In this document: positions 4,327 through 64,000 of the stretch, one piece after another
How positions within the stretch are numbered: position 1 is the first letter of the stretch
How the letters are laid out: each line of letters begins with the position of its first letter
Source of the DNA: Ascidiella aspersa
Taxonomy: Eukaryota
Length of the DNA stretch: 64,000 nucleotides
Assembly: GCA_963924565.1 (NCBI GenBank)
Contig: OZ004614.1
Location: 26,474,001 to 26,538,000 of the forward strand
Direction: 5' to 3'
The notes under the pieces: generated by a model
Told to the model about the DNA's origin: nothing
Databases searched by the model: none
What the model saw: the letters and a program-made list of their open reading frames with translations, nothing else
Program-made: the position numbers and the translations under genes

Positions 4327-7300
4327 GTGATGACGTGGTATACGATGGAGCAGAACTGGAAGTTTGGTCGCTCGAGAAAGTTGAAGATGCAGATCTTGAG
4401 GATGCGGAGTCTGGACTTGCGCTTGGATGGGACGGTGAAGTAGATGGGCTTCCCGTGCAAAGACATCTTACGCTTCCTGTACGGGACAGGGGGTGTGTCG
4501 GAGGTGTGGCCCCAGGGGGTGGGCACTCGGAGAAGCTGCAACAATAAGTCGTAAGCTGCAGACACAAGAAATTTCAGGGAAATATTTAATAAAGAGCGAA
4601 AGATTTTTAAGTCGTGAAATTATCTGTTGGTAACTTAATCACTCCTACCATCATTGAATTACAAACTGTTTTATAATAAAGCAAGGTTGTGCGAAAGTTT
4701 GCGAATTTATACAAATTGTTGTTAATAGTATCACAATATAAGTTGTTTTTTCAAGTAGTAATAAAACGTGTGTAGCATTTGTTTCTACTGTTTGTTAAAT
4801 GTTGAAATTAAACTTAAAAATTGCTTATTGTGTGAAATCCAACTTACGGTTGCGGCGAGAGAAGGTCTCCTACCGCTTCGGATATTGTGCTTTCCTCTCG
4901 ACGAATCATCGTTTGACACGTCATCAGTATGAGGATGGTCGGAAGTGAGATACTGGAAGTGAACAGGGCTCGAAATTACGGAGGCTTATTGCAGGAGTCG
5001 AAATTACAAGGCGGACATATTACAGGGATCGAAATTACAAGGCGGATCTGTTGCAGGGGTTAAAATTACGAGGCGGATTTATTGCAGGGTTTGAAATTAC
5101 AAGGCGGATTTATTGCAGGGCTCGAAATTACAAGGCGGACATATTACAGGGGTCGAAATTACAAGGCGGACATGTTACAGGGTTTGAAATTAAAAGGCGG
5201 ATTTATTGCAGGGCTCGAAATTACAAGGCGGACATATTACAGGGCTCGAAATTACAAGGCGGATTTATTGCAGGGCTCAAAATTACAAGGCGGACATGTT
5301 ACAGGGCTCGAAATTACAAGGCGGAGCTGTTGCAGGGGTCGAAATTACAAGGCGGATCTGTTGCAGGGGTCAAAATTACGAGGCGGATTTATTGCAGGGC
5401 TCGAAATTACAAAGCGGATTTATTGCAGGGTTCGAAATTACAAGGCGGATTTATTGTAGGGCTCGAAATTACAAGGCGGATTTATTGCAAGGCTCGAAAT
5501 TACGAGGCGGATTTATTGCAGGGTTTGAAATTACAAGGCGGATTTATTGCAGGGCTCGAAATTACAAGGCAGGCATGTTACAGGGGTCGAAATTACAAGG
5601 CGGATCTGTTACAGTGGCGAAATTACAAGGTGGGCATATTACAGGGTTCGAAATTACAAGGCGGATTTATTGCAGGGCTCAAAATTACAAGGCGGACATG
5701 TTACAGGGGTTGAAATAACAAGGCGGATCTGTTACAGGGGTCGAAATTTTATTGCAGGGGCTCGAAATTACGAGGCGGATTTATTGCAGGGTTCGAAATT
5801 ACAAGGCGGATTTATTGCAGGGCTCGAAATTACGAGGCGGATTTATTGCAGGGTTCGAAATTACAAGGCGGATCTGTTACAGGGGTCGAAATTACGAGGC
5901 GGATTTATTGCAGGGCTCGAAATTACAAGGCGGATCTGTTGCAAGGGTCGAAATTACAAGGCGGATTTATTGCAGGGCTCGAAATTACAAGGCGGATTTA
6001 TTGCAGGGCTCGAAATTACAAGGCGGATTTATTGTAGGGCTCGAAATTACAAGGCGGAAATATTACAAGGGTCGAAAATACAAGGCAGATCTGTTGCAGG
6101 GGTCGAAATTACAAGGTGGGCATATTACAAGGGTCGAAATTACAAGGCAGATCTGTTCCTGGGGTCGAAATTACAAGGCGGATGTATTGCAGTGCTCTAA
6201 ATTACAAGGTGGGCATATTACAGGGTTTGAAATTACAAGGCGGATCTGTTGCAGGGGTTGAAATTACTTTACATAACCCCTTTGACAAGTAAATGAAAAG
6301 TTGTTTCAAAAAATGTTTTGCAATTTACTAAACCTGACGTAATTGCAAGTTGTCGTTGCTGAAGTAAAGCAACATTTTGGGCTACATATGGTGGTTAATA
6401 AAAGCAAAACTTAACTTAAATTTCGCATATTTTCATTTAAACTATTTTGTTGAACTGACAAAACGATGCTATGTGATCATTTTAAAATATTGCATATCGG
6501 AACAAACAAAGAATCGTGCATTCCAGGTGAGAACAATTTAACATAAGAACCTTCTTGTTTGGGTTGAGATTAAGAATGTTGTGAAATAAATTTATATTTA
6601 AATTGCTGCTTACTTTAAATGTCAAGAAGCGCCTAAAATATTCATGCGGCGGCAAAATGGCCTTTAAACTTCTAAAATCGATGTTGGGCGAAAATGACAC
6701 GAGAGTGAATTGTCTCCAACGTCTGCCAGATGCTAAGCTTTTAAAGGCTAAGGTGCGAAGATGTACCCAAATGAAATGCAATCGCCCGAAACCCTTATTG
6801 TTAATATTTTGCGAACATGAAAAAAGGGGAATTTGAGTTCAACTTTATATGCGCTTTGTTTCATTGTTACACATTACACAAAAATACAAAAAAGAAAAAA
6901 GTAACTTGTCCTTTCCTATGTGAGCCGCTTTATTGAAAAGCTAGTGATTCGCACATTTTCACTTGCCACCGCTTATTTTCACACCGTTGTACAAACTGCG
7001 TTAAAAGCACTTAACGTTGAAAGGTTCTTGATGAGCCTGAAGCAATGCGAGGATAAGTGGCAGGATTGTAAATCACAAGAGTTTCTGGTTATAAAGACAA
7101 ACAACAACAACAGCCGACCACAGCCGGGGAATATGGCTAACTTGCAAATCTCCCGTAAGCCCACCTTAAGCCTACCAAACATAAATAACTATAGGTAACA
7201 AGTTAAAGACCTTAACTGTAAACTAAAGCTTTTAGATCTATAATATTGTTTGCTGCAAGGATTTGTAGCTAAGATGAAAAACTAGTATAACCCTCTAAAG

Positions 7301-42100: not shown

Positions 42101-45100
42101 GCGCTGGCGAACGCGGTGCTAGAACTGCTAGCCAAGAAGCTCAGGTCACAAGCCGATGAGGTGAGCTGCTTTGCACGAATTATTGACTCTCTAATTTAGT
42201 ATTTCGAACAATTAATTTAAATTGGTGGCTGAATACGACTCGTCTGACAATAGATTCTCTGGAACTCCTTTTTGGTGTAATTTGTTGCCTGGCCTGTAAT
42301 GGTTAGCCATAGTACTTAAAATAAGAAGTTGGATTAGCGCAAAAAAAAAAGAAAAGCTATAGAATCTCGTTAGCTTTTACAAGTCTTATGCTGCTTTGTT
42401 GCCGTTCCTTTTTATCTAAAGATATTTTCTAAAGGAGTTGAACCACTCTTATTTTTGCTTGTTATGTCCCTAATACCCCTACTTTACTTCTAATATCGCC
42501 TACTTTACATTAGGCATACAAAGACCCCCTAATGCCCCCATTTACCCATGGGCTTGCGACGAGTGAGACCTATAAAACCCCACGCTCAACCCTTACCTCA
42601 CACTTTACCCCAGGCTTGCGAGGAATGCAAGGCGATCAGCCGCAAGTTGTTTGAGAAGCCGAACACGATAGAGGAGCTGACTGAGATGCGCGATTGGATG
42701 AAGGGAGTCCCTGAGCAGCTGATGCAGCATCAGGAGATCATCGACCGAGCTATGGTTGATTACGAGCTCATCGAGGAGTTCTACTACAACCTCGCTCAAG
42801 ATGACTTCAACGCAAAGTAAGATTACTCCAAGCTTAGGAGAATAAGTCTTTTGCTGCTAGTAGCTACGAGAAAATATTGCAGCACCTTAAAGGCAAACTA
42901 TTGAAGCCGCCTCAACACTTTTAGAACAGCATATTGTATTTTGCCAAAACTTTTAGCCTTAAGATTGTCGCAAAAGATTTTTTAAGGACAGTCCTATATT
43001 TGCATAGGGAAACAATTTTCTTATTTGCGTAAACAATCTAAAATGTACTAAATAATTACGACTTCCCTTAATCGCATAATGCTTCAACTTATTCGTTAGA
43101 TGGTGAATTTATTTTGATTTCAATCAAAGCAACGACCTTAACTGCAACACATTAAGGTTAGGGTTATATTGTTCACCAAGGCTTGATGTGCATGATCTGT
43201 ACATTAAGTCGAGAGTTGTGTGTGTTCAGTCTTTCAAGCCGACTCAATGAATATCGAGCGTGGATGCATTGCGTCACAAACACATCGTTTATAACGTCAC
43301 AATGCAACGCGCTGTAACGCGCTATCGATCAATTATGCATGTAGCCGCGTCGGTTTGCGGAACACAGGCGTTCATTACGTAACAGTATACCTTCGCACTG
43401 TGATATGACAATCGGGTTGCGCGATTGTTTTTTCATATGCAGCATTATGACGTGACAATCAGTGGCTTGTTTGGGAATTCCCCAATATACCTGCTAAAGT
43501 GGATTTTTGCAGCAAAATGTTCGTTGCATTATGTGACTAAACTTTATGCTTATACACGATGTATAACCTAATCCAATGAGATAATAAGTCGGCAAACCAC
43601 TGAAATCGCAGCATTATTACGTTTTGTTTATAATGGTGTGACCAAATGAAAACATTACTTCACAGTTTGTGACAATAATGTCAATGAACCATCAACTTGA
43701 TGTTTTGTTTGATGCAATATCTTTGTATGCTGGGCAATTGTTGCGTAACTTGGATTGCTTTCAACAAAGTTAGGTGCAAATAAACGAGTCACATATTTTG
43801 GCAAAAGTCAACAAGCAACATCGCGCTGAACATCCAGAAGTTTTGCATAATTTTGTCGCAAATCCTTCAACTCAAGTTGACGAGGATGGCGACCAGTAGC
43901 CCGAGGTGGCTTGCAACAATGAAGATGACGTACAATCGGAAGAACATGACGTCAACAGCTCGCGCGACGCTCTTCCACTCTTCTTGCTCCAGATCCTGCC
44001 TCTCCTGCTCCTCCTCCTTCGCTATTCGCTCCAATTCACGTTTCCGTCGTTTACGCAACTTGCGCTTCTCCTTTCGTTCCGTTTCCGACTTTTAGAGTTC
44101 AACAAAATGTGCGTTAAAAATAAAACGGGAATAACTGAGAAACAGAGATTGGAAAACATTTATTACCTCGCCATTGCTGAACATTCTTTTGTAATGTTTT
44201 ATACATTTTTCAAAATATTAGTTTAGTAAAAACAGATATAACGCTAAAAAGAATAATGTGTTTTCACTACAATTATATAGACAAAACTCTACTTTGCTTA
44301 AAAGGCAATGTTTTTGTACAAGATTTCAACCTAAAAGAAAATTAAAAATCATGGTAATTGTTGACAGAGAATAACATTTGATTTTAAGAATAATTAAACT
44401 TGCTAAATGTAACATCCGTCAGTTTGTTTTCTGTTTGAACATTAAAACAAAGTTTTCAATTTTATTCTTTTAGAAAAGCAAATAAATTTAAAGTCAAACA
44501 AAACGAGAAACACCTCAATACAAACTTACCTTTGCCAGAAATCCTTTAACGTCAGCTAATGCCGAAAACATCTTCGACTTTGGAACGCTCCACTTGTTCT
44601 GCAGGAGATTCCCCGCAGTTGGGGTTTTGTCCGCGCGCAAATCTTCCGCGGACGACTTCCGACTTTTACCCCCTTCCTTGTTGTTCGACGGAGACTGGTT
44701 TAACGTCAATTCCATCGGACTAGATAATCTGCAACCAAAAAGGCTAAACTCAGAAAAAATACACATTTGCAGGAAAGTGTTTGTGCAGAAGAAATTCTTC
44801 GTGGCATTTTTCAACTAACATTTTATTAAGAACTTTATAAACGAGGAACTTACTGCTTTCCGTGTTTCTTCGGTGCTTCCGTAATGTACTCCACGTCCAC
44901 AACTTTCGGCTGGATTCCGTAATTTACCGTCTTTGGAACTTCCTTCTGTACTAATCCTTCCACTCTAGAATCCGACCAATTTGACTCGTTATCCGAATAA
45001 GTGACGTCATCTGCCTCACTAATGTCACCGTCATCTGGTTTGACGTCATCGTAGTGTGCGTCATTAACGATTGGTGCCATCCACCGTGAATCTCGCTCCC

Positions 45101-48100
45101 CTAAAGTCCAGTACTTGTCGAAAAACTGTAGGATTCTTCGATATTTGGTGGGAATTGAGGAATCGTTCCGCGAACTTTTCCGCGACCGCTGCGTTCCGTG
45201 TTTGTCCTCATCGCTCGAAATTTCTCCCTCCAAGCAACGAACTCTGCAACTGTAAGAACATTTGTTAACATTTCATAACGTTGTGTGGAATAATGACCTG
45301 GAAAAACCGTTAACAACACAAACTAGACGAAGATAGGTAATATGTTGAGTGTGTTCAGCAGATTGTTGTTCATTACTGGGGGTATGTTGTTTTGAAGCGA
45401 TCCAGTAGAAATGCCCCTGGTCGTAATAAATGCATTGAAATATCTTAAACGGACCCACTACCAGTTTAATTAAATGCTTGCTTCAACATCTCACCGTCCT
45501 TGTTTCTTCTTCCCGCCTTCCCTCCGTCTTTTACCGGCCACCTGGAAGTCGTTCACGATCGGCTTGAAATGCACGTGAAGCACCATCACGGTCATCATGA
45601 GGTTTACCCCGAGAAGTCCCATGCATATCACGAAGTAAACTCCTAAGTATGGACCGGTGGATGCCGGGAACATCTCACCAACAGCGAGAAGGAATACCTG
45701 CAATATTAAAAGGAATTTACTACGTGAGCGTATCGTGACTTACCATGAACGTGAGCATTATCGTGATGTATCTTGATTTACCATGAATGTGAGCATTATC
45801 GTGATTTACAGTATCGTGATTTACCATGAACGTGAGCATTATCGTGATTTACCATGAACGTGAGCATTATCGTGATGTATCTTGATTTACCATGAATGTG
45901 AGCATTATCGTGATTTACAGTATCGTGATTTACCATGAAGATGAGCAGTATCGTGATTTACCATGAAGATAAGCAGTATCGATATTTACCATGATCGTGA
46001 GGAGTATCGCGATTTACCATAAACTTGAGCAGTATCGTGATTTACCATGAACGTGAGTATCTTGATTTACCATGAACGTTAGCAGTATCGTGATACACCA
46101 TGAACGTGAGCAGTATCGTGATTTGCAGTATCGTGATTTACCATGAACGTGAGCAGTATAGTGATTTACCATGTACATGAGCAGTATCGTGATTTACCAT
46201 AAACGTGAGCAGTATCGTGATTTACCATAAACGTGAGCAGTATCGTGATTTACCATAAACGTGAGTAGTATCGTGATACACCATGAACGTGAGCAGTATC
46301 GTGATTTACCATGAAGATGAGCAGTATCGTGATTTACCATAAACGTGAGCAGTATAGTGATTTACCATAAACGTGAGCAGTATCGTGATTTACCATGAAC
46401 GTGAGTAGTATCGTGATACACCATGAACGTGAGCAGTATCGTGATTTACCATGAAGATGAGCAGTATCGTGATTTACCAAGAACGTAAAAGGTATCGTGA
46501 TTTACCATGAACGTGAGCAGTATCGTGATTTACCACGAACTTGAGCAGTATCGTGATTTACCATGAAGGTAAGCAGTATCGTGATTTACCATGAACGTAA
46601 AAGGTATCGTGATTTACCATGAACGTGAGCAGGATCGTGATTTACCATGAACTTGAGCAGTATCGTGATTTACCATGAGGATGAGCAGCATCGTGATTTA
46701 CCATGAACGTGAGCAGTATCGTGATTTACCATGAACGTGAGCAGTATCGTGATTTACCATGAAGGTGAGCAGTATCGTGATTTACCATGAACTTGAGCAG
46801 TATCGTGATTTACCATGAACGCAAAAGGTATCGTGATTTACCATGAACGTGAGCAGTATCGTGATTTACCATGAATGTGAGCAGTATCGTGATTTACCAT
46901 GAACGTGAGCAGTATCGTGATTTACCATGAAGGTGAGCAGTATCGTTATTTACCATGAACGTGAGCAGTATCGTGATTTACCATGAACGTGAGAAGTATC
47001 GTGATTTACCATGAACTTGAGCAGTATCGTGATTTACCATGAACGTGAGCAGTATCGTGATTTGCAGCCCGATCCTCTCCCCAGAGTCTGGAGGTAGGTA
47101 GAATCCCAGCAGAGCTACAGTTGTTAGGATGACGCTTGGGAAAAGCATGCTTTGCATATAGAGTGAAGAGTTTCTACGAAGCACAACTGTGAACGCAACC
47201 TAAAAACAGAGCAGATATTTTATGAAGGCCTGAGAAACGATTAATGTTTATTGGGTTCCCTAGAGTACTGGTGAGAAGAATCTGTTTATTTTAAGTAACC
47301 AACCCTCGAACCACGAATATTAACAATTTGCCAAGCACTCTTAAACCAAACCATTTCCGCTATATGATGGGTTGTACCAGCTTTGTTATTGCACTCACCT
47401 CTGCAAACATACTGTCGGTGATAGTGAAGTTGTTGTTAGCTTTTGTGTCGAGTTGCTGAGTGGCGGTGACCACCAGTGGACCGTGGTGTTCAAAGTGCAC
47501 TTCATCGTCCCCCGTCCCACTAACAACAACAAGGTAACATTAATTGTTGATATTGGTGACAGTGATAAGTGTTTATTCCAAAGAAGTTGTGCGCTTTGTT
47601 ATAAAGGTTGTGTCCTGGCATTATTTACATGTGCGTACAGCTCTATGCATTGTCTCCAATGTACTCATGCTTGTCGAACTGCCCACGATATTTAAACTCG
47701 CATTAACGTTTATTTAGCTCCATTATATGCACTAATACCACACGTCTGCGTCCCCAATGTTCTCGGTTCGCATAACGTGTCCTCACCTCCCTTCATCAGT
47801 GTCGTTGTGCGAGCTTGCGTTGTGTAAGCTTGCGTTGCTCGATGCTTTCGTGCTCAGGATCAACGACCCGTAGTCGCGCACCTGAAACACAAACCATCTA
47901 AACCTAGCAGTGAAATGTTAGACAGCTGGCTGTGAATCAAGCGGTCAAACAAGGGGTCTATTTAAAGAACTACGATAACTGACACAATAAGCAACAAATT
48001 ATATGCGGAATAAGCAGCTTTCTGCAAACTTTCCACAATGCATTTAGGAAGTCACTTCTAACTTTCTGTTATTGAAAAAAGTGATTTGTTCGACTCACGT

Positions 48101-51100
48101 TCTTCTTGACGCTGATCCCCGCCAACCTCCACTCGCCGGTGTTGATGAAGAATCGATCTGTGTCTTCCTCCAACTTCAAACTGCTTCGGTCGCTTGAAAG
48201 ATCGATCCGGGAGATCGGCTGCGACCATGACACGAAAGTCATGTGACACACCTGCCAACAATACACTCTGTTACGTCACTACATGGAAGTCATATGACAC
48301 ATCTGCCAACAATAGACTCTGTTACGTCACTACACGAAAGTCATGTGACACACCTGCCAACAATACACTCTGTTACGTCACTACATGGAAGTCATATGAC
48401 ACACCTGCCAACAATACACTCTGTTACGTCACTACACGAAAGTCATGTGACACACCTGCCAACAATACACTCTGTTACGTCACTACACGAAAGTCATGTG
48501 ACACACCTGCCAACAATACACTCTGTTACGTCACTACACGAAAGTCATGTAACACACCTGCCAACAACACACTCTGTTACGTCACTACATGGAAGTCATA
48601 TGACACACCTGCCAACAATACACTTTGTTACGTCACTACACGAAAGTCATGTGACACACCTGCCAACAATACACTCTGTTACGTCACTATTCCGCGTGTT
48701 TTAAAATATTGGTTAATTGAGTTGTATGGTTGAATTAAGAATAACAACTTGTTGATTAAAGGGATGAAGTTTGTACTCTTGTGTCAATATCGTGTTGCGA
48801 CTTTCCTAGTTTAAATTCTTGGCAGATGGAGTTTAGTTTTGTTTGAACTTTTATGTTTTCGGAAACTAAATGAGCTGTGACTTGTTAAATACTGGAAAGA
48901 AACGTCCAACGCTGATTGGTGTTCTACAGCTACTTCAGTATCGTACTCTAGGGTTACCAAGAGTTGTTCGTTGCACCTGAACATCGAAGGGGAAGAAAGC
49001 TGTGTCGATGCTGCAAGAAGTCTCGAAAGCGCTCGGCTCCTGGTACTTCACTGTTCCGTCATAAACGACCTGTACGTGGACGAGTCGTGGGGGGTAGCTC
49101 CTGCTGCCAACCTCCTCGTAAACAACAATGTCCGGGAACCAGATCAACTGGTGCGGGATCTCAACTGAACAAGTGGGACAGGGATGGTAGTAACACTATA
49201 CTGGAAGCCGTGCTATCATTAGTGTTCGACTTACTTCGCCCTGGAGCCCGTGTAGCTCAGCTGGTAGATCGACAGTCCCGGTATGGTCAAGGTTGTGAGT
49301 TCGAATCCCACCACAAGCTCGTGTATTTTGCTGGACTAATTTCGGGTAAACAGCCAAAGGGACTCGGTGTATTTCATACCCACGTTTGTGGTTATGATCG
49401 TTCCGTATGATTTAAAACTTTCAGATCGCATTTTATTCATGTCTAGCGATTTCAAAACAGCAGCTTTAGAAATCCAGTGGCATGAAGTAAGCAAAAATAT
49501 TAAACGAACATAAGCTATTTCAACCAATAGTTTCCCTTACTTTCTTTGATGCCACCAAATTCCTCAGGATTCCAAACAAACTGATAATCCTTCCAAACAA
49601 CTCGATACCAAACCAAACTCTTCAAAACCTGGTTCTTTTCGTCCAAATCTAACACCTGAAGAAGAAAATCAATCATTAATTCGATGTGATGTTAACATTC
49701 ATCGATTACATGAGCGTTTCTTAAACTGTCAGTTTTGTTCACCCCTGGCATCAAATGCTGCGTTTCAATTCACCCAAATAAATAAAACCGTCGCAACTGT
49801 CCATAAGCGTCATTGGCATGAGCACCAGTATGTGCGAGGTATTTGTGGGTTGCTTGTTGTACCACATTTCTTCTGGTATTAAACAATTTTGATGTTGGTT
49901 TGATTTGTGCAAGTTTCTGAGCACAGAAATATAAAAAAAAATCATTCACCTGTTACACAATTGATTGGTTAATCCTTGTAAAATTACCCACCCTTGGTCG
50001 AACCATTCTGTAGTTTAATAAACACTGGGTTGCATCTCACATGCGATGCATTGGCCTGGTTATCAAATGATGCATATTTACGGGCGTAATGTAAACGTTG
50101 AAGCAAATTTGAGGTTTACACAAAACACTGCAGCCACCTGTTGAGGTTAGAGATGTGGAAGCAGATAAGGAAGCTACTTACGGGATTTCTCTTAGCGGCC
50201 AATCACGCTTCTTTATTTTCTTTCACATAACGTGATCTCGCATGAATAATGGAAAGCTCAAAGATTGTCCGGAACCTTAGGAAGGTGGTTTATTTTGCGA
50301 CAAACACGAAATATATTACTCATATATTTAAACGTATAGTTCGACTAAACCCACTAAAGTAACACGATCCTTAGAAGCCAATAATACTTCCATCTGTCAG
50401 TTAATTTAAACCACTTAAAATGTTCTATATTTATGTGAAGCCTGCAAGTGATATCTTGCTGGAACCTTCAACACACCTTTGGTTTTAACCCGAACTTAAC
50501 ACTTGCGGTGAAATAACGCCTTAAACCACTTTGTTGTTTCAGTAACCTTAGTACAAAGTGTGACCTGATGTAAACCTTATCTCTAGCTGTTATTTTTACC
50601 TCGAATTAAACAAAGGCCGCACTTTGAACAACCCGAGCATTTTGTGATCTATCACTGTCGCTGTTGTGTTAGTTTGTGCTGATTTTATGTCAGCTCATTA
50701 AACTTTTACTAAATGCGCAACGCAGGAAGTAAGAGCGCAACCATTAAACGCAAATACTAAAAGCACCTGGGCTCTACATTTCGTTACAACCACTTAACAA
50801 CTTTACATTTTGCCATAATTTAAAAATTTCAACATAAACGATTTAACTTCGTTTAACTTCATTGAACACTTTTATAGAAAAAAAGTATATAAAAAATACA
50901 GTCCGTTTTAGGTGCTGCCACCTAGTGAAGAACTTACCTGTCTATAGGTGAATCCGACTTTAATGAGGATGTTTTCTTTATAGTCGTAGACAGGGGGCAT
51001 TGTTGCGTCATAGCCGTCCAACAATGCGCGCTTGAGTCGTTGCACGGGCGAGTCTGATTCACTCCCATTGTTGTATTGCTTGTTCTGACTGCGACTCAAA

Positions 51101-54100
51101 CTCGAAGTGTCTGGGAAGTAGAAGGTGATTATTGAGAGTCGGTTAAAGTGAGCCGAGCGTTCCGGGTAATAATGTGATTTCCCACCAAGCCATCAACTTG
51201 GATATATTTAGGCTAATACTTCATTTGCATATCTGTGCACGTCATCGAAACGTTTCCTGAGGTCTTTCAAGCGTCCCGTTATGACGTAACTTTGACGCCA
51301 TCTTAAAAAGTTCAAGCGTCCCGGTAAAAAAAAATAATTTCCTGCTTATTATAAGATTAAAGTAGAAGTAAAGATTGGGGTCGCAATTTCAATTCGGTTC
51401 ATGATTACTTTTGATTGGCGAGATCCAACTGAACATACAGAACCCCGGGAATGGCACTTCAACAAAAACACGTTTTCGTGATAATTGCATTAACGTCTAA
51501 CAGTGTTATTTGGAATGGTTATTGAAAACATATTGCGTGGGTTCATCCGCGTTCGTGAGTTCGAATCCCGCCAACACCACCAGTGCAAAGTATCTGTTGT
51601 GTTGTAGTGCATTGTGTTGCAGTGGAGTTTATGGCTTTCCAGTGAATGCGCCGACCTTATGCCAGTGAACCTGAAACTTCGAGGAATTTACGGCATATAC
51701 ACCTGAGGAAATCCCACCACAATAGTGTAAACGCAACAAGGTCGACCTTGCAATTCCATAAAAACGTAATTTCCTGCATTGGGTCGACGCTTGTATGTTT
51801 GCTGTAAATATTACAAACACTTTCCCACCCATGGGACCAATTAGAATCCCATAATCTATTTCTATTACGTTCTAAGTCAAGTTGCTCTTTCAACCTAATT
51901 TAGTGTTGCTACTTGGAAGTTGCGATAACGATGGATGGAAGCAACTTGACCGCAATGTTCCTTGGTATTAAGTGGCCGCTAAGTAAGAACTAAATTTAGT
52001 GGAAAGAATCCAAACAGGAAAAACGAAAATATTGAGTAAGACACGCCCAGCAGTTGGAAATTGTTGTATGATCTCACCTTTAACTGCGTTGAAGCTTGCG
52101 CCATTGACTTGCGTTGTTTTGACGAGGCTTCCTTTTGAGGCGGCGTTCCCGGCGAACGAATGCCCACATTGCCGCAGAATTAACAACACAACCACGATAA
52201 GTGGAGCTAGCCGCATCTTACTGGACGCAAAGTACTTGAATGTCATACAAGCGAGGTCTGAAGGTTATGCGAGGATAAACCACATTGGCTGGCTCAGTCA
52301 CATTTTTTTCTTGCCTTTGATATTCAAGAAAACCTCGGCCTTATCTGCCTCTAAACTTACATTACATCGAATATAATTTTGGAGGCTTCTCTTTTGAAAC
52401 AAACTAAATCTTTATTTGCTTTTCTGTCGGTAATTTTAAAATGTTTTTCCCATTTGATCTACATTGTGGGGAGAAAAAAAGAGTGTTTCCGTTAATTATT
52501 TTGTAAAACAGTCAAATAGTATTTGCGCGTTATTCTTGATTGTGAGTTAAAACGAGAAAACAGCTATCGAAGCGCAACGCCTGATTTTTCACTAAAGTAG
52601 TTGCTGACATCCGCTAAAAAAGAACACTTATTAAATAGTTAGGCTTTTATCTTGCTTATTTGGATATGATATGCACATACACGCCAGAAGCACTGTTGCT
52701 AAGTTGCAATTATAATGTATTCGTGTTCGTGACGCCCGTTTAGTGGAACGGAAGTGGTGGATCAATCGCTGCCTTCACATCTATTCGCCGTCTTACTTGG
52801 TGCTTGTCACATCGGGCAAATAGAGGAATGTCTCCAGCGTGGATTGCCAAATGTATGTTACACTACGGTTAACCCAAATACAGTAGGAATAATATGAAAG
52901 GCCATATAGATTCTATAGAACTATTGGTAACTTTTTTTACTACTGTGTTTGCTTTGATATTCTTACTACGTCCAACGAAAAATTCAGTCATTATGCTCCA
53001 AAGATAACTAATTACTTCATTAAACTAGGTGCAGTAAAACCAACTAAGCTTTCTTTGATAAATGTTTGTTAAAATACACTTGTGTAAGAATTGAATCCAC
53101 AAACTACAACCATCGTTCAACCATACCTAACGTTATGCCCCTATGTATACTTGGTATAGCACGTTACTGCTCAATAAGCTCGTTATACTGGGTTCTGCCA
53201 ACATGAACATGCACCAGCAGCTCCCAAGATACCTCTGCTACTTACAAACGCGCACGATTCAACCTTCAAGCAAATGTTACTTTCCCGCAGCCTGAGTGTA
53301 GCGATCCCCACTAAGTTACATCTGCTTCGAACAAAGTTAAAACGTGTTGCAAGTGGCACGAACTGTCCGCCCTGTTAAGGCGCACCGGGGTTCTCGGGAA
53401 AATCGTTACTTTCAAGTCACGTTTTACATAAATTCGCTGCAAATGTGCTAAGATGCCTTGCAACAACCGAACACCAAATCAACATCACTTTGCTTTGTTG
53501 GCGTTTCCCACAAAGCGTTACTTCCCCTCGTCTACCAGTCTGTCATCTCAACGCACCATTAATACTTCACGCGACCCACGAATATATGCGACCCGTGGAA
53601 ATATGCGAGCCGTGAAAATATGCGAGTCAAGTTTGTTTTTGCAGCGAGTGAAAGTTACAACTTTCTGTTTTATTTGTTCACTGACGGACTTTACTTTGCT
53701 GTGATATCTACGGTGAGCAAGCTGAGCATTCGTTGTTTGGTGGAAAACCTTAAAGATCTATTTGTATAAGGCCTTGACCTCATTAATATTGCAACACAAG
53801 GATCACACAACCGCGCATTTTCACGTTTATAGCGCACTTAAGCATCTGAGTGTGATGCTGAAACCTCATTTGTGCGTTGAACCTGACTCACACATAAAAT
53901 TAAAAATATAAAGCACGTAAATCAACATTGAAAGCAAAACAACTTGAGCTCCAATATTCCAAATATGGTAAGTTTTAAATCTCCCGTTTAACCACAGTTG
54001 TGATATAGTTTAACCACAGTTGTGATATAGTTCTAACAATAAGCTTAATGCCTTTGATGCTTATCCGCTTGTGCTCGCTGCACAACTTCCCACACAAGGA

Positions 54101-57100
54101 TTGTTGTTCCTTTTCAAAAACCTCGACCGCTGTCCATCTGTTACGTCACTGACGTGCTTTTCCTCCCGTCTATTGTGACGTCCTCAATAAAGCGCTGGTC
54201 ACCTTCGACTTATTAAGGTGCTATAAATATGTTCGGCTATATTTAACACTGACCTGTTTGGTCTCGTCTAAATAGGTTTGTAAACAACCAATTGTCCACC
54301 TTTCAATTTACAATTGTTCGCTCTTTGTGACGTAGAAATGGCGCAATTTCAAAAGTAAACAAATTCGTTTCGTTTGGAATAGGGTAAACGCGCATAATAT
54401 TTAACGCAAATATTCTTTTTAGTAAATATAAATATACTTTTAAAGTTTCCGCATTTTTTCGCGCTATTAACTAACTACATTGTGACGCAACAACGTATAG
54501 AGCGCGAAACATCTGCTACAAGTTTTTCTAAGCGGCGTATTATTCCTAACTTCGCTGTATCATTAGGACGTGCGTACAAAGGGATAATTAGATAACTAAA
54601 TAGATTGTAACTTAATGTTGTTGCATTCAACTTTCAGCAGAAATGCCTCCCTACCCGCAAATGTATTGTTTAAACGAAACTGTTTCCTCTTTCAACCAAC
54701 GAACCCCGTTCATAATTAACCTTCTCGACCAACCAAACCGATTTTTCTTCACAGGTGGTCGGCGATCGGTTGGCCGAAGAAGTTGGAAGATCAGATGGAA
54801 GCTACTTACAGCACTTTGAACGAACTTGAGGAACATTTCCACAAACTACAGCTGGGAGACCAGAACAACTTCCAGGACAGATTGGACACTCTGCAGGTGG
54901 CACATGCGCCCAGCTACCAAACCTACACTACCCCCCTAACCAACCAATACTAACCCAGCTATCCAAATAGGCATAGGCAGAGTTAAACATTAGCGATATA
55001 CATTTGCTACTGATTACCAATTTATCGACTGATATGTTTGGTTGAGTTGTGTACTTTTACGTATTATATTTAGATGTTTGGTTGTGTAGAGCGTGTTTAT
55101 TGTGTTTAGATGCTTGTTGCTGGGTTCGCCGCCCACAACGAGATCAGCAAAGCTCACGAGGTTGCCAACGAAGTTCGTCGCATCAACAAACAACTCAAGG
55201 AATGCCAGGGACTTGCTCAGGTTTACAACCAGAGAGAGAGGTTATTCGGGATGCCGGTCACCAACGTAAGCTAACAACTATTTGTATTCCGCAGAATGCA
55301 ACACGTTTATGCATTGGGCGTTTTTTTTAATGTTTTCAGATAAACTTTTGTGTTATCGGTGTTATTTTACAAAGTACGTTTGACGCGCGTTGTTTTTCGA
55401 CTTTCAAGCTTCAATATTCCTGTTTTGTTATTTCCTCGGCTTTCGATTACACGAGCTATTGCGTGTGCATCCATCCATGACCGTTCCAATGCCGCAAAAA
55501 TTTGACAAAAACCTCGCAGTGTGACGTCATAGAGACAATCGCGCGTCGGCCGAAACTGCTTCGGTGAGCTTGAAACAACGAAGTTCAGCGTGGCATTAGT
55601 TGTTGCCTCGTAATGTAACTTGGTATTATAGTTGCCTTTTAGAATGTTATTTGATGTTCTAACATCGAGGTTACTTTTGATACGCCGTATGTTCTTTATA
55701 CCATAAGGTTGGTTTAACAAACGCAAAGCATAACTTGGACATTCCCTCACAAGTGTAAAGCATTGGGGAACAAAATGCACTTATGTGAGGCTCAGTGGCG
55801 CCATGTAGCGGCAGTCGTATAAATATTTTCCCACCGCGAGGTTTTTGTTGAGTCTTTTTCGAAATTCCTGATCCTTTCACGAGGCTTGTCGTTCTCGGGT
55901 TGGGGTTTTACCCATCGCTGCTTTGTTCACTCGTGCGTGAAGAAGGGTGACGTCACGTTATCCTAATGATGACGTAACTTGCCTCTTCTTGACGTTATGC
56001 TGTGTTACGACGTATGATGTTCACAGACGCAGATTGCAAATTTCACTTTTTCACGTCAACTAGTTGATAGTGACGCTGTCATCCCCATTTGTTCATTGTT
56101 CATGTTGCCAGGATTAATGATCGTGGTTATTCTCGAAAAACTATTATTCTCACCCCTTTACTTGAGATCGGTTTGTGACAGAAACCAATTTGTTCAGTCT
56201 GTCTCTAGCTCTCACAACTTTAACCCTTCGTTAAACTTGTGGCGTGTAGTTAAACATAGAAATGCATTCATTATCAACGTTTAACATTGTTTTGTTTTTT
56301 CTACATTCGTCATTTCACTCATAATCTTTTAGTTTCGTAGTTTCTGTAGTTTATTTCATTACGTCATCATCTCGTAACTACGTCATCGTTCTTTTTTACA
56401 CAAATCATCATCTACCCTGACTTCATCCATGTGACGTCATCCATCTTGACTTCATCCATGTGACGTCATCCATCCTGACTTCATCCATGTGACGTCATCC
56501 ATCCTGACTTCATCCATGTGACGTCATGCAATCGCGGTTGTGACGTGATACGTGGTGACAACAGTACGATAAGCTGAGCAAGTTGGTGAAAGACTTCCAA
56601 CCTTACCGTGACCTTTGGACGACAACTTCTGATTGGATGAGGTGGCACGAGTCATGGATGAATGACCCGCTGACGTCAATCGACGCCGAACAAATGGAGC
56701 GGAGCGTGAACGACAGCTTCAGAGTTCTTCACAAATGCGCCAAGCAGTTCAAGGAGATTCCTGGTAAGATTGAAATTATATTTAATTATTGCGAATATAT
56801 AAAAATTATCTTTTATATTTGTTTTACATGGAAAATAATGATGGTTTAATATTGTTAGACGTGTCATGAAGGTTTAATATTGTTAGGCGTGAACTACGTG
56901 TACTTAGAATTTTAGATTAAGAAGTGTCGGCTTTTTACTGTTAATGTGCAGTAGTTTTAGAGCTGCTTGTGTGTTAGGCGTGCAGCAAGTTGCCCTGCAA
57001 GTGAAGGGAGACGTGGATGGGTTCAAACCGTTCATCCCACTCATACAAGGATTGCGCAACCCTGGCATGAGGATAAGGCATTGGGACGCTCTCTCCAAGG

Positions 57101-60100
57101 AACTTGGGTTCTCCGTTCAACCAAAGGTATAAACATACCGTGTATAACTTGGCTGATAAATCAATTGTTAGGATCAAATGCTTTTCTAATTTTTTTCATC
57201 GATTAAATATCTCAAGTTTTATGTTGTTTCCAGCTTACAGATTATAATCAATACAGGTCCATGATACGATGCTGCATGACCAGGTTTATTGTTGCCTCTA
57301 AAATTATTATAACTATTTTTAAAACAAGTGTATTTTTTCTTTTTTCGTTTGACCAAACGTGACAAAACATTTTTAATTGTTTTTTTGGTACATTAAAACT
57401 AAATTAAAGCTAACAGCAATAATTTAATTGATGCAATTCTTTATGTTACTCTAAAACATTTTCCGTCTTTTATGTAAGTGATAAATCTCTATTTAGCAAG
57501 TTGTAATCTCCCTGTTGATAGTTGTTACTGAGTGAGTGCTGTGTTGTGTAGGCGGCCTTGACCTTCAGCAAGTGCCTTGAGATGAACTTGGCTGATCACA
57601 TCGACAAGATCGCCAAAGTTGCCGAAGTTGCTGGGAAGGAATTCAGTATCGAGCAAGCTCTTGACAAGATGGAGAAGGAATGGGAACCGATCAATTTCGA
57701 GGTAAACCTTCAACATCTTCTACTGATAAATCCTATATTACCTTTGAGGTAAATCAAGTGTTTAAGATGCATTTTTGTATTTATTTGTTTATTTCAGCTT
57801 TTCCCCATAAAATAAGGTTTACTGGGATCCCCACAACTATCATTTCTAGAATTGGCACATTCCTTCAATAACCTTGTACCAATTTTCAAGGTGAAATCTT
57901 ACAAAGAAACCGGAACTTTCATCATAAAATCACCGGAAGAAGCGTCACAGTTGCTTGATGACCACATTGTGATGACACAAACGATGTCCTTCTCCCCTTA
58001 CAAGAAACCTTTCGAGGAGAGGATTGCTACTTGGGAGAGCAAGCTGAGCATGACGCAGGTAAAAAGCATGAGTCAGCAATCACGGTTTACCAATTTTTTT
58101 GACGTCAATCTTTTGATTTAACTTGGCGATGTAATAACCTCTTGTGACACTCACAAGTCGGCGTACGAAAACATCCTCTTGTTAGGCGTAAATAAATTTG
58201 TCACGTACGTGCGGTATAAATAGACTTATTTAAGTAGTATAATCTAATATAATTATATATATGTTATGATTCAAAACAATTAGTTATGTGCATAGCTTAC
58301 TATTTTCTGTTGAACAGGACGTGTTGTTGTTTATAGGACGTGTTGTTATTGTATAGGACGTGTTGGACGAGTGGTTGGTTTGCCAGCGATCGTGGCTCTA
58401 CCTCGAACCCATATTCAGCTCGGAAGACATCAACCGTCAACTCCCGGTTGAAGGGAAGCGATACCAGACCATGGAGAGGATGTGGAGGAAGCTCATGAAG
58501 AACGCAAACGACAACACACAGGTGATCACGCGCTCATCACGCAGGTGATCACGCGCTCATCACGCAGGTGATCACGCGCTCATCACACAGAGATCACGCG
58601 CTCATCACGCAGGTGATCATGCGCTTATCACGCAGGTGATCATGCGCTCATCACGCAGGTGATCACGCGCTCATCACGCAGGTGATCACGCGCTCATCAC
58701 GCAGGTGATCACGCGCTCATCACGCAGGTGATCACGCGCTCATCACGCAGGTGATCACGCGCTCATCACGCAGGTGATCACGCGCTCATCACGCAGGTGA
58801 TCATGCGCTTATCACGCAGGTGATCAAGCGCTTATCACGCAGGTGATCACGCGCTCATCACGCAGGTGATCACGCGCTCATCACACAGGTGATCACGCGC
58901 TCATCACGCAGGTGATCACGCGCTCATCATGCAGGTGATCACGCGCTCATCACGCAGGTGATCACGCTCTCATCACGCAGGTGATCACGCGCTCATCACG
59001 CAGGTGATCACGCGCTCATCACGCAGGTGATCACGCGCTTATCACGCAGGTGATCATGCGCTCATCACGCAGGTGATCACGCGCTCATCACGCAGGTGAT
59101 CGCGCGCTCATCACACAGGTGATCACGCGCTCATCACACAGGTGATCACGCGCTCATCACACAGGTGATCACGCGCTCATCACACAGGTGATCACGCGCT
59201 TATCACGCAGGTGATCACGCGTTAGATAAACCTTAGCAATTTGTGTAGCATGTCTTGAGCACTATTGTATTATTATTGTCTCCCATGTGATGTAAATTTT
59301 GCCTACTTTTGTAACTTTTACAAGTGTTATCAACAATATCTGCGTATTTCGCTCTGTTTATGTGAAGTTTCCCAGTTTTAAGTAATCTTTTCTAAGGTGA
59401 TTTCGCTGTGTTCGGACGCTCGGCTCCTTGAGAGCTTGAAGGAGTGCAACAAATTGTTGGAGCAAGTTCAGAAAGGACTGAGCGAGTATTTGGAGACGAA
59501 GCGAGCCTCATTCCCCAGGTGAGCCATCCGCTGGTTTGATCCGTCTTCCTCATTTTACTTTGTTCATCCTTAACTTCCACCTTCCAGGTTTTACTTTCTT
59601 TCCGATGATGAGCTTCTTGAGATTCTGTCGCAGACCAAAGACCCGACCGCCGTCCAACCTCATCTCAGGAAGTGCTTCGAGAATATATTCAAGGTAATTT
59701 AACACAAGTTTGACGCCATGTTAGAAGGGCTGTGAAACGTTTAAAACTAATATTCAGTTGGCTTTGTTGGCTTTAAATTGATGTTTTGAAGTTGTTTTAT
59801 AACGTCTTTTTTATTCAAAGTTGATCTCAATGTGAAATAGTACAAATAGTGGGTTGCCAATCACTTCTAAGACGAACTGTATTTGACTCCTCAACACTTC
59901 TGAGTTTAATTTACTCCACATCTATCAACTCGCACATTTTGTTGTCAGATCAAGTTTGAGTCTGACATGAAGATGACGGAGATGATCTCGGGTGAGGGCG
60001 AGCATGTTGCCTTCAGCGAGGATCTTTATCCCACAGGGAACGTGGAGGACTGGCTTGGTGAGGTGGAGAGAGTGATGATGCAGAGTGTGAGGATGCAATG

Positions 60101-63100: not shown

Positions 63101-63638
63101 TACCTCGCAATAAAAATACTGTTCAATAAAAGCACTTTTCAATTAAAATACTTTTATATCAAGGTTTCACTTTAAGATTATCGCTTGGCTCGAAATAAGT
63201 TTTGCCAATTATTTTTTAAAGGATAAATAGCTAACGTAAATTTATTTCAAATTATTCTATTTAATTATAAAAAGGTAGTTTATTGAAATATATATTGCCG
63301 TCATGCAGAGATCACAATAAAAAACAGTACTTTAGTGGGATTCGAACTTACGACCATACGAACACGCGACCACTGTCTCACTAACTGTGCTATCAAGTCA
63401 AAACTTGAAATTCCTGGGCACTTCAGCCACACATGCAAGTTCACAACTTGTTGTTCAGGTGGATGGTTTTGTGACCAAGTGTATCCAGTTGTACGAGACG
63501 ACTATTGTGAGGCACGGACTCATGTTGGTCGGACCAACTTGCTCGGGAAAGACAAAGTGCTACAACGTCCTCGCCAAAGGACTCACGCAACTCAAAGGAC
63601 AACCTTCCATCAGCGGCGGAAACTATGAGGCTGTTCAT
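33180..63638 (+). CDS. DNAH1: Dynein axonemal heavy chain 1 (inner-arm type), N-terminus through AAA1 into AAA2; gene continues beyond window end
   Basis: 36 coding exons: 33180-33317, 33910-34005, 34573-34645, 35039-35219, 35680-35969, 36361-36522, 36854-36989, 37387-37509, 37903-38060, 38405-38508, 38970-39080, 39584-39751, 39956-40127, 40599-40803, 41415-41513, 41935-42160, 42614-42816, 54755-54896, 55110-55265, 56565-56763, 56978-57126, 57552-57701, 57891-58058, 58357-58521, 59397-59518, 59588-59693, 59949-60162, 60516-60700, 60758-60840, 60979-61092, 61167-61404, 61641-61811, 62144-62233, 62495-62606, 62878-63092, 63459-63638. DNAH1-type N-terminal motifs [41 protein letters not shown]; linker [26 protein letters not shown]; AAA1 [34 protein letters not shown]; AAA2 GPTCSGKT. 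The first three exons rest on splice phase only. Confidence 0.95.
33333..33599. mobile_element. MITE in the first coding intron of DNAH1
   Basis: TIR core TGGAAAGTATGGCA / TGCCATACTTTCCA; repeated GGGTGCAC; 8-bp TSD TTTGGTGG at 33325-33332 and 33600-33607. Confidence 0.8.
43867..52246 (-). CDS. 5-HT3-receptor-like / nicotinic-type Cys-loop cation channel subunit (non-alpha), complete, 12 exons, ~731 aa, nested antisense in a DNAH1 intron
   Basis: Exons 52246-52078, 51110-50938, 49655-49541, 49164-48977, 48251-48099, 47881-47787, 47519-47399, 47199-47038, 45697-45495, 45249-44854, 44728-44530, 44088-43867 (2196 nt, phases consistent). Signal peptide; LDEKNQVL; WYRVVWKD; [10 protein letters not shown]; Cys loop [15 protein letters not shown]; TFVSW; GEW; M1-M2 [27 protein letters not shown]; M3 [14 protein letters not shown]; M4 [17 protein letters not shown]. 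No vicinal cysteines in loop C. Confidence 0.92.
45722..47063 (-). repeat. 28-bp minisatellite (~48 copies) made of an exon 3' end plus the 5' splice site
   Basis: - strand unit ATCACGATACTGCTCACGTTCATG|GTAA = codons ITILLTFM of the M2 helix plus the donor. The first copy lies in exon 47199-47038. Confidence 0.97.
48230..48689 (-). repeat. 51-bp minisatellite (9 copies) made of a 3' splice site plus the exon 5' end
   Basis: - strand unit AGTGACGTAACAGAGTGTATTGTTGGCAG|GTGTGTCACATGACTTTCGTGT. The last copy supplies the real acceptor and the start of exon 48251-48099 (VCHMTFV). Confidence 0.97.
49246..49345 (+). mobile_element. tRNA-derived SINE copy
   Basis: TAGCTCAGCTGGTAGATCGACAGTCCCGG...GTGAGTTCGAATCCC, colinear with the 22721 copy. 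Confidence 0.7.
56417..56527. repeat. 29-bp tandem repeat (~4 copies) just upstream of a DNAH1 acceptor
   Basis: Unit CTGACTTCATCCATGTGACGTCATCCATC, ending ~37 nt before the exon at 56565. Confidence 0.9.
58519..59221 (+). repeat. 23-bp minisatellite (~30 copies) starting exactly at a DNAH1 donor
   Basis: Unit CAG|GTGATCACGCGCTCATCACG. The first CAG is the last codon of exon 58357-58521. Confidence 0.97.
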
Positions 63639-64000
63639 GTGAGTTTGTAAAGTTGTTCATGTGAGTTGGTAAAGTTGTTCATGTGAGTTTGTAAAGTTGT
63701 TCATGTGAGTTTGTTAAGTTATTCATATGAGTTTGTAAAGTTGTTCATGTGAGTTTATGAAGTTGTTCATGTGAGTTTGTAAAGTTGTTCATGTGAGTTG
63801 GTAAAGTTGTTCATGTGAGTTGGTAAAGTTGTTTATGTGAGTTGGTAAAGTAGTTCATGTGAGTTTATCATTTGTTTATGTGAGTTTGTAAAGTTGTTCA
63901 TGTGAGTTGGTAAAGTTGTTCATGTGAGTTGGTAAAGTTGTTCATGTGAGTTTGTAAAGTTGTTTATGTGAGTTTGTAAAGTTGTTCATGTGAGTTGGTA
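63632..64000 (+). repeat. 22-bp minisatellite (at least 16 copies, truncated by window end) made of an exon end plus donor
   Basis: Unit TGTTCAT|GTGAGTTTGTAAAGT. The first copy overlaps the end of exon 63459-63638. Confidence 0.97.

Follow-up and report, generated by a model that had tools for sequence, protein, structure and literature searches.

Minisatellites that reiterate a splice site by duplication of an exon/intron boundary are known as 'mirages', and their first description is attributed to Canestro and colleagues (Nucleic Acids Res, 2002). In amphioxus, mirages in Adh3, the globin genes BflGb6 and BflGb9, troponin C and PGBD5 are described as minisatellite-like duplications of the boundary at either exon end, which are unstable in length between haplotypes and occur several times per genome (PMC3087553; PMC3902484), and one of these sources further reports normal splicing by reverse transcription-polymerase chain reaction (RT-PCR) and discusses mirages as a route of intron gain (PMC3087553). 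A related arrangement is found in intron 7 of human F7, where a 37-bp variable number tandem repeat (VNTR) presents 5-9 identical donors of which only the most upstream is used; the decoys are activated once the upstream sites are inactivated, and those strengthened to a consensus value of 91 still fail to compete, competition being confined to perfect-consensus decoys (PMC1557585). The same paper lists LMNB2 and PDGF as further cases of reiterated donors with silent decoys, as well as intron 2 of IFI6 (6-16), with 25 pseudo-sites, and intron 13 of CBS, with 15-20 repeats, in both of which the first two pseudo-sites are constitutively used (PMC1557585). Here, analysis of a 64,000-nucleotide stretch of the genome of the ascidian Ascidiella aspersa (assembly GCA_963924565.1, contig OZ004614.1, positions 26,474,001 to 26,538,000 of the forward strand; hereafter the window, within which all positions are given) established that an intron of a minus-strand Cys-loop receptor gene consists almost entirely of a 28-nt minisatellite in which the end of the upstream exon and its donor are reiterated, and this structure is a very copy-rich example of the described class. 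We consider it probable that the array is a junction-spanning ('mirage') minisatellite, that is, an unstable and length-polymorphic VNTR, whose decoy donors are likely silent and whose exon-proximal donor is the one most likely used. A literature search retrieved no paper combining minisatellite, ascidian and splice site in the collection searched.

The array (45720..47063, minus strand), as delimited by a parse of its units and by Tandem Repeats Finder (TRF), comprises 45 units, each made up of 24-26 nt of exon end followed by GTAA, and one degenerate terminal unit, the first unit being the exon end itself. TRF reported a 28-nt period with 33.5 copies, 90% matches and a score of 1528 at 46125-47063, a further 11.5 copies of the 28-nt period with 79% matches at 45809-46124, and higher-order periods of 56 and 84 nt, the array scores ranging from 1528 to 1675. 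Every unit carries TG/GT (a slash in a nucleotide motif marks a splice boundary), so that beside the authentic junction there are 44 decoys, and the unit donors fall into 39 of the type ATGGTAAAT (ATG/GTAAAT, the authentic one included), three of ATGGTGTAT and one each of GTGGTAAAT, TTGGTAAAT and ATGGTAAGT. The intron holds 48 hexamers of the form GT[AG][AT][AG]T, namely 44 GTAAAT, three GTGTAT and one GTAAGT, and the original prediction of an intron filled with about 48 copies of exon end plus GTAA therefore agrees well with the 45 units and 48 donor-like hexamers counted here. It had also been proposed that each more distal donor adds a multiple of 28 nt, which holds for units 1-33, spaced at 28 nt, and fails in the distal third, where the spacing is 43, 38 or 25 nt. 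The exon copy is matched exactly by seven of the 45 units; units 1-8 show 0-2 base differences from it, insertions and deletions are found in the distal third, and blocks of units have been duplicated, in that units 22-26 resemble units 27-31, unit 41 equals unit 44 and unit 42 equals unit 45. Upstream of the 24 exonic bases, AA represents two further bases common to exon and array. The last unit measures 38 nt and is followed by the degenerate unit, whose first base is G (45739), whereas the first base of all 45 units is A. Unit 34 (46098..46140, minus strand; 43 nt, from the unit list) contains CTGCAAATC, previously read as upstream exon bases carried by an internal unit at about 46121; the sequence is indeed present, but its presence is explained by a perfect 15-nt duplication within the unit at 46110-46139 (TRF period 15, 2.0 copies, 100% match), and copying from the exon is not needed. 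When the 308.6-Mb genome was searched with the 28-mer, allowing at most three mismatches, all 39 matches fell within the array and a reversed control returned none; the array is locus-specific and not a product of chance, and membership of a dispersed repeat family was ruled out on the same counts. The possibility that the array is coding sequence was discarded as TAA occurs once per 84 nt in every frame.

The gene that harbours the array (about 52246 to 43867, minus strand) was recognized from Pfam matches and exon reading, the searches being performed exon by exon rather than with a joined model. Its exon peptides match Neur_chan_LBD (PF02931, E 1.1e-12) and Neur_chan_memb (PF02932, E 9.4e-09), the best solved-structure matches being 5-HT3A chains for the M1/M2 exon (E 3.4e-11) and nicotinic alpha-4, alpha-2 and alpha-9 chains for a ligand-binding exon, and the reading of the exons yields a Cys-loop of the form C-x13-C that spans an intron. 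By homology, the gene is assigned to the cationic Cys-loop receptors of the 5-HT3/nicotinic type, with a ligand-binding domain and an M1-M4 transmembrane region. The exon for M1 and the first half of M2 (47038..47199, minus strand; translation and PF02932) ends in ITILLTFM at a codon boundary, its 3' end and donor reading ...ATCACGATACTGCTCACGTTCATG/GTAAAT, where the G that opens the donor is position 47037, while the next exon (45542..45697, minus strand; translation and Pfam) encodes the second half of M2 and M3 and is entered through ttaatattgcag/GTATTCC, 45697 being its first base. The 1340-nt intron (47037-45698) accordingly interrupts the M2-coding sequence, as had been foreseen, and its position is between 12' and 13' of M2 when the conserved arginine is taken, by convention, as 0'. 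The non-repeated remainder of the intron is confined to its 3' end (45698..45719, minus strand), where sequence reading places a pyrimidine tract and the acceptor ...ttccttttaatattgcag. All receptor exons inspected are open, and these open exons, together with the C-x13-C motif and the synonymous nature of the two differences listed in the M2/M3 exon for a DNA run with the same species label (X6; 45668 and 45683, both at third positions by codon reading, in a run whose reads are mostly no more than 90-95% like the window), make the gene look alive. Its interpretation as a pseudogene was rejected, as the apparent change of frame after FPFDVQ proved to be an ordinary intron with CAG/GTGCAA.

The exon-proximal donor (ATG/GTAAAT, 47032..47037, minus strand), which shares its sequence with most decoys, had been proposed to be the productive one, and our findings support this: the join TFM|VFLL appears to be that of the functional product, since the first donor alone keeps the frame and since six of six full-length relatives read ...ITI(L/M)LTFMVFLLTV(G/C)(E/D)MFPASTGP... 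without an insertion at the junction. A seventh protein fetched among the relatives is a 96-amino acid fragment with the end TFMVRR, and the open frames of relatives P0014, P0023 and P0035, the source of which may be gene or transcript, cross the TFM-VF junction unbroken. An intron at the same position, with no array, is possessed by two paralogs that lie on another chromosome-scale piece and show 77% and 72% identity in the M1/M2 exon; the intron therefore predates the array, which enlarged a pre-existing intron rather than creating one. The donors of these paralogs (L002 and L003), GTAACG and GTATGC, are uninformative on the ancestral donor. In the 143-amino acid open frame of relative P0037, this M2 segment (15 residues) occurs twice in tandem without a break in the frame, and this stretch of M2 may be prone to duplication in other genes or species too.

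The decoys closely match the authentic donor, 38 of them being identical to it from -3 to +6. The most distal full donor (ATG/GTAAGT, 45738..45743, minus strand) is positioned 46 nt from the acceptor and, as originally noted, would leave an intron of that length; it forms seven Watson-Crick pairs with U1 small nuclear RNA (snRNA), contiguous from -1 to +6, as compared to six for the proximal donor. The genome's own U1 has a canonical 5' end, and seven other donors, taken from the window and from the two paralogs, form 5-7 pairs with it; judged by this pairing, GTAAAT appears to be an ordinary donor in this animal and the distal GTAAGT a modestly better one. The U1 snRNA genes themselves are arranged in a tandem array with a period of 1193 nt and at least 42 copies, all scoring 144 bits (G000 C5:29506522-29578111; L016-L018). 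In agreement with the frameshifts and the in-frame TAA anticipated for distal donors, a premature stop is predicted from all 44 decoys: for 42 of them the TAA is located inside the retained array, 19 codons past the exon end, and for the first two (donors 2 and 3) a frameshift leads to a stop in the next exon.

Comparison with X6 established that the array is length-polymorphic between individuals, with an approximately five-fold difference in copy number. Run X6 supplied 407 reads, 262 of them 90-95% and 135 of them 95-99% alike to the assembly; over most of the non-coding sequence of 43800-49700 this individual diverges from the assembly by 5-10%, and polymorphism is very high. A segment of 1070 nt of the array (45758..46827, no strand) is absent from the X6 allele, as seen from a joint 45757->46828 in three reads with three different starts and 63 letters on the shorter side, and from the depth across 45770-46754, where four of five bins have none and the remaining one has 0.74; this allele would retain about 9 donors in an intron of approximately 270 nt. 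The same reads bear on the proposal that the distal GTAAGT may be the original donor, carried away from the exon as the array expanded, which we could not uphold. At 45739 the plus-strand C is replaced by T in nine of nine X6 reads, corresponding on the gene strand to a G to A change at +5 that renders the distal donor GTAAAT; furthermore, the identity of the last unit with unit 42, and of unit 44 with unit 41, is indicative of recent internal duplication, and the G belongs to the degenerate terminal unit while A opens all 45 units. Given the A in X6, the uniform A of the units and the derivation of the last unit from unit 42, the G is more simply read as a substitution on the reference haplotype than as a relic of an original donor. 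In run X4, which originates from another study and is labelled as another organism, a 271-nt contig is identical to 45558-45828, GTAAGT included; because of this identity the run has no outgroup value, and the presence of GTAAGT in it means that this donor is no private lesion.

A dynein heavy chain gene on the plus strand (window 42548-55330) hosts the entire receptor gene in one of its introns; dynein-like open frames are present at 42548-42820 and from about 55110 onward, with Pfam DHC_N2 matches further on. On this plus strand, each unit of 45720-47063 reads as a donor-like AAC/GTGAGC and an acceptor-like GCAG/T, and the host dynein intron thereby receives about 45 splice-like sites from the array. 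The available RNA run with the same species label (X7), of which about 6% was read and 34 reads were placed, gave a depth of 0 in the four bins with the two flanking exons and of 0.2-2.9 in four array bins, and the first mate mapped to the minus strand in all 34 reads. The most likely source of these reads is unspliced plus-strand RNA of the host dynein gene, and the run shows at most weak, if any, receptor expression in that sample. A search of a set of 5.8 billion proteins with the 73-amino acid unspliced frame, composed of the exon and its read-through, returned six proteins, none of them from this gene and the best 81% identical.

The array shows several of the properties by which mirages are recognized: its units are of minisatellite size and arranged head to tail, the junction constitutes a terminal unit, and the array is both specific to the locus and polymorphic in length. 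We envisage that it was founded by a tandem duplication of approximately 28 nt that took in 24-26 nt from the exon end together with 2-4 nt from the start of the intron, and which, on account of the AA common to exon and array, may have been bounded by AA/AA microhomology. Subsequent amplification by slippage and unequal exchange, with multi-unit blocks included, would have continued until nearly the whole intron was replaced. Such an array would be tolerated if the spliceosome, as is most likely, takes the exon-proximal donor, the sole one that gives the conserved M2 sequence, as any use of a decoy would result in an mRNA with a premature stop.

The use of the proximal donor is most likely by analogy with F7 and with the mirages of amphioxus. 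The amphioxus mirages share with the window a reiterated splice site, the occurrence of donor-side and acceptor-side arrays, and length instability, but they differ in copy number (3-6 in the globin examples versus 45 here) and in unit size (150-160 nt in the globins and 10-72 nt in Adh3 versus 28 nt here), and normal splicing was demonstrated by RT-PCR in amphioxus, whereas for the present locus it is presumed. For Adh3 of amphioxus, somatic instability is also reported. In F7, as in this array, the first unit spans the exon/intron boundary, identical pseudo-donors follow it and copy number is polymorphic; the units of F7, however, number 5-9 and include 4 exonic bases each, as compared to 45 units with 24-26 exonic bases each here, and exclusive use of the upstream donor is an experimental result in F7 and a presumption in the present case (PMC1557585). 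IFI6 and CBS likewise present many reiterated donors behind an authentic one, the difference being that their first two decoys are used, whereas here such use would shift the frame (PMC1557585). The Rogers model of intron gain through tandem duplication across AG/GT, as summarized in the amphioxus paper, resembles the present case in that a duplication carries splice signals and the extra copies can be removed, but it creates an intron, whereas here the intron position pre-existed (PMC3087553).

Several observations weigh against the interpretation of the array as a mirage with silent decoys. RNA structure does not mask the decoys, a candidate explanation that was ruled out by folding: the exon end with six units folds worse than its shuffles (z +3.02, with 199 of 200 shuffles folding at least as well), and, given this lack of structure, the decoys are accessible. 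No splice joint was present among the 34 X7 reads obtained from about 6% of that run, so that use of the proximal donor was not seen directly in them, and none of the independent contigs and reads listed extends across the full 1.3 kb of the reference array, the interior of which is covered by pieces of 82-117 nt. In addition, the evidence for the F7 rule comes from mammalian cells, and the rule may fail in this animal, while intron definition combined with a distal GTAAGT close to the acceptor could favour that decoy. Finally, four of the eight tandem arrays in the window lie at splice junctions, which hints at more than a neutral accident.

Among the alternatives to a mirage with silent decoys, the one that survives best, although we regard it as unlikely, is that the decoy donors act as a rheostat, the decoy-spliced fraction, frameshifted or stopped, being degraded so that copy number, and whether the last donor carries G or A at +5, would determine how much productive receptor mRNA is made, in line with the original suggestion that copy number might tune splicing. 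The identity of 38 decoys to the authentic donor from -3 to +6, the additional U1 pair of the distal donor (seven versus six), the premature stop predicted from every decoy, the unstructured array RNA and the roughly five-fold difference in copy number between individuals are all compatible with such a function, as is the use of the first two pseudo-sites in human IFI6 and CBS (PMC1557585). On the other side, a five-fold difference in length from one individual to another is hard to square with a tuned copy number, decoys are silent in F7, LMNB2, PDGF and the Adh3 and globin genes of amphioxus (PMC1557585; PMC3087553), and the 34 X7 reads contain no splice joint. By precedent, tuning of splicing by copy number is less likely than silence of the decoys.

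Appreciably less probable still is the notion of a hypomorphic or null long reference allele, in which the distal GTAAGT, as the best donor and the one closest to the acceptor, would capture splicing, most mRNA would be non-productive and the gene on this haplotype would be decaying. The contiguous pairing of this donor with U1 over the seven positions from -1 to +6, its distance of 46 nt from the acceptor, its absence from the X6 allele and the absence of receptor-strand exon coverage among the 34 reads drawn from about 6% of X7 would fit such a scenario. The exons inspected are nevertheless all intact, GTAAGT recurs in the X4 contig from a different study, and in the F7 minigenes perfect-consensus decoys alone competed (PMC1557585). 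We give very little credence to an assembly artefact in which the repeat is real and its unit number in the window wrong, for although the X1 contigs match both flanks exactly and end at 45769 and 47038, with the interior represented by the short pieces mentioned above, contigs of both X1 and X4 contain variants of the interior units in every bin of the array, the ordered variant units and block duplications are unusual for a collapsed or inflated assembly, and an allele of another length was cleanly detected as a joint in X6.

The array in M2 is one of eight tandem arrays detected by TRF at a score of at least 100 in the window, and one of the four that span a splice junction. A second is located in the same gene, where nine 51-nt units (48230..48689, minus strand; TRF and exon reading) each combine about 31 nt from the end of an intron, acceptor included, with 20 nt of exon start (VCHMTFV, containing the second Cys-loop cysteine); this array appears to be the acceptor-side counterpart of the first, with the last acceptor alone predicted to be productive. 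The two others belong to the dynein gene. At 58515-59221, 31 copies of a 23-nt unit (CACGCAG/GTGATC...), identified by TRF and by Pfam-flanked exons, start 7 nt inside a dynein exon at ..CACACAG/GTGATC.. and carry CAG/GT in every unit; the flanking exons match the consecutive DHC_N2 positions 220-272 and 275-307, and the start of the unit also resembles that of the next exon (GTGATTTCGC at 59397). The array at 63632-64000 has a 22-nt unit (TGTTCAT/GTGAGT...), formed by the last 7 nt of a dynein P-loop exon and GTGAGTTTGTAAAGT, in at least 17 copies and runs past the end of the window. The remaining arrays, at 4964, 13613, 14564 and 56408, exhibited no relation to a splice junction where examined; that at 4964-6267 is composed of a 31-nt unit in 42.5 copies with 82% match and has no recognisable coding flank. 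Elsewhere in the receptor gene, sequencing depth at 49244-49315 is approximately five-fold in excess in all DNA runs, with numerous loose ends, and the resemblance of the loose-end consensus to a tRNA T-arm indicates that it is probably a tRNA-derived dispersed repeat.

A rough and generous estimate, made without a dedicated tool and assuming that the 64 kb hold 120 junctions and that seeds measure 51 nt, puts the probability that a random duplication covers a junction at no more than about 0.1, and that of finding at least four of eight arrays at junctions below 0.01. It is tentatively conceivable, though we would not lean on it, that junctions are preferred birthplaces of minisatellites here, such that mirage formation would be a junction-targeted mutational process in non-vertebrate chordates beyond the lancelets that remodels introns and generates alleles differing several-fold in decoy load, the long allele with G at +5 being a possible natural splicing hypomorph of a subunit that forms the receptor pore. 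The presence of four such arrays within 64 kb suggests that the array-making process is common in this genome. With 45 near-identical donors, of which a stronger one is nearest the acceptor, and with natural alleles on offer that differ in unit number (about 9 versus 45) and in the base at +5 (A versus G), the locus is a naturally occurring test case for how a 5' splice site is chosen in animals other than mammals, and it bears on whether the F7 rule that the most upstream site wins extends to this animal.

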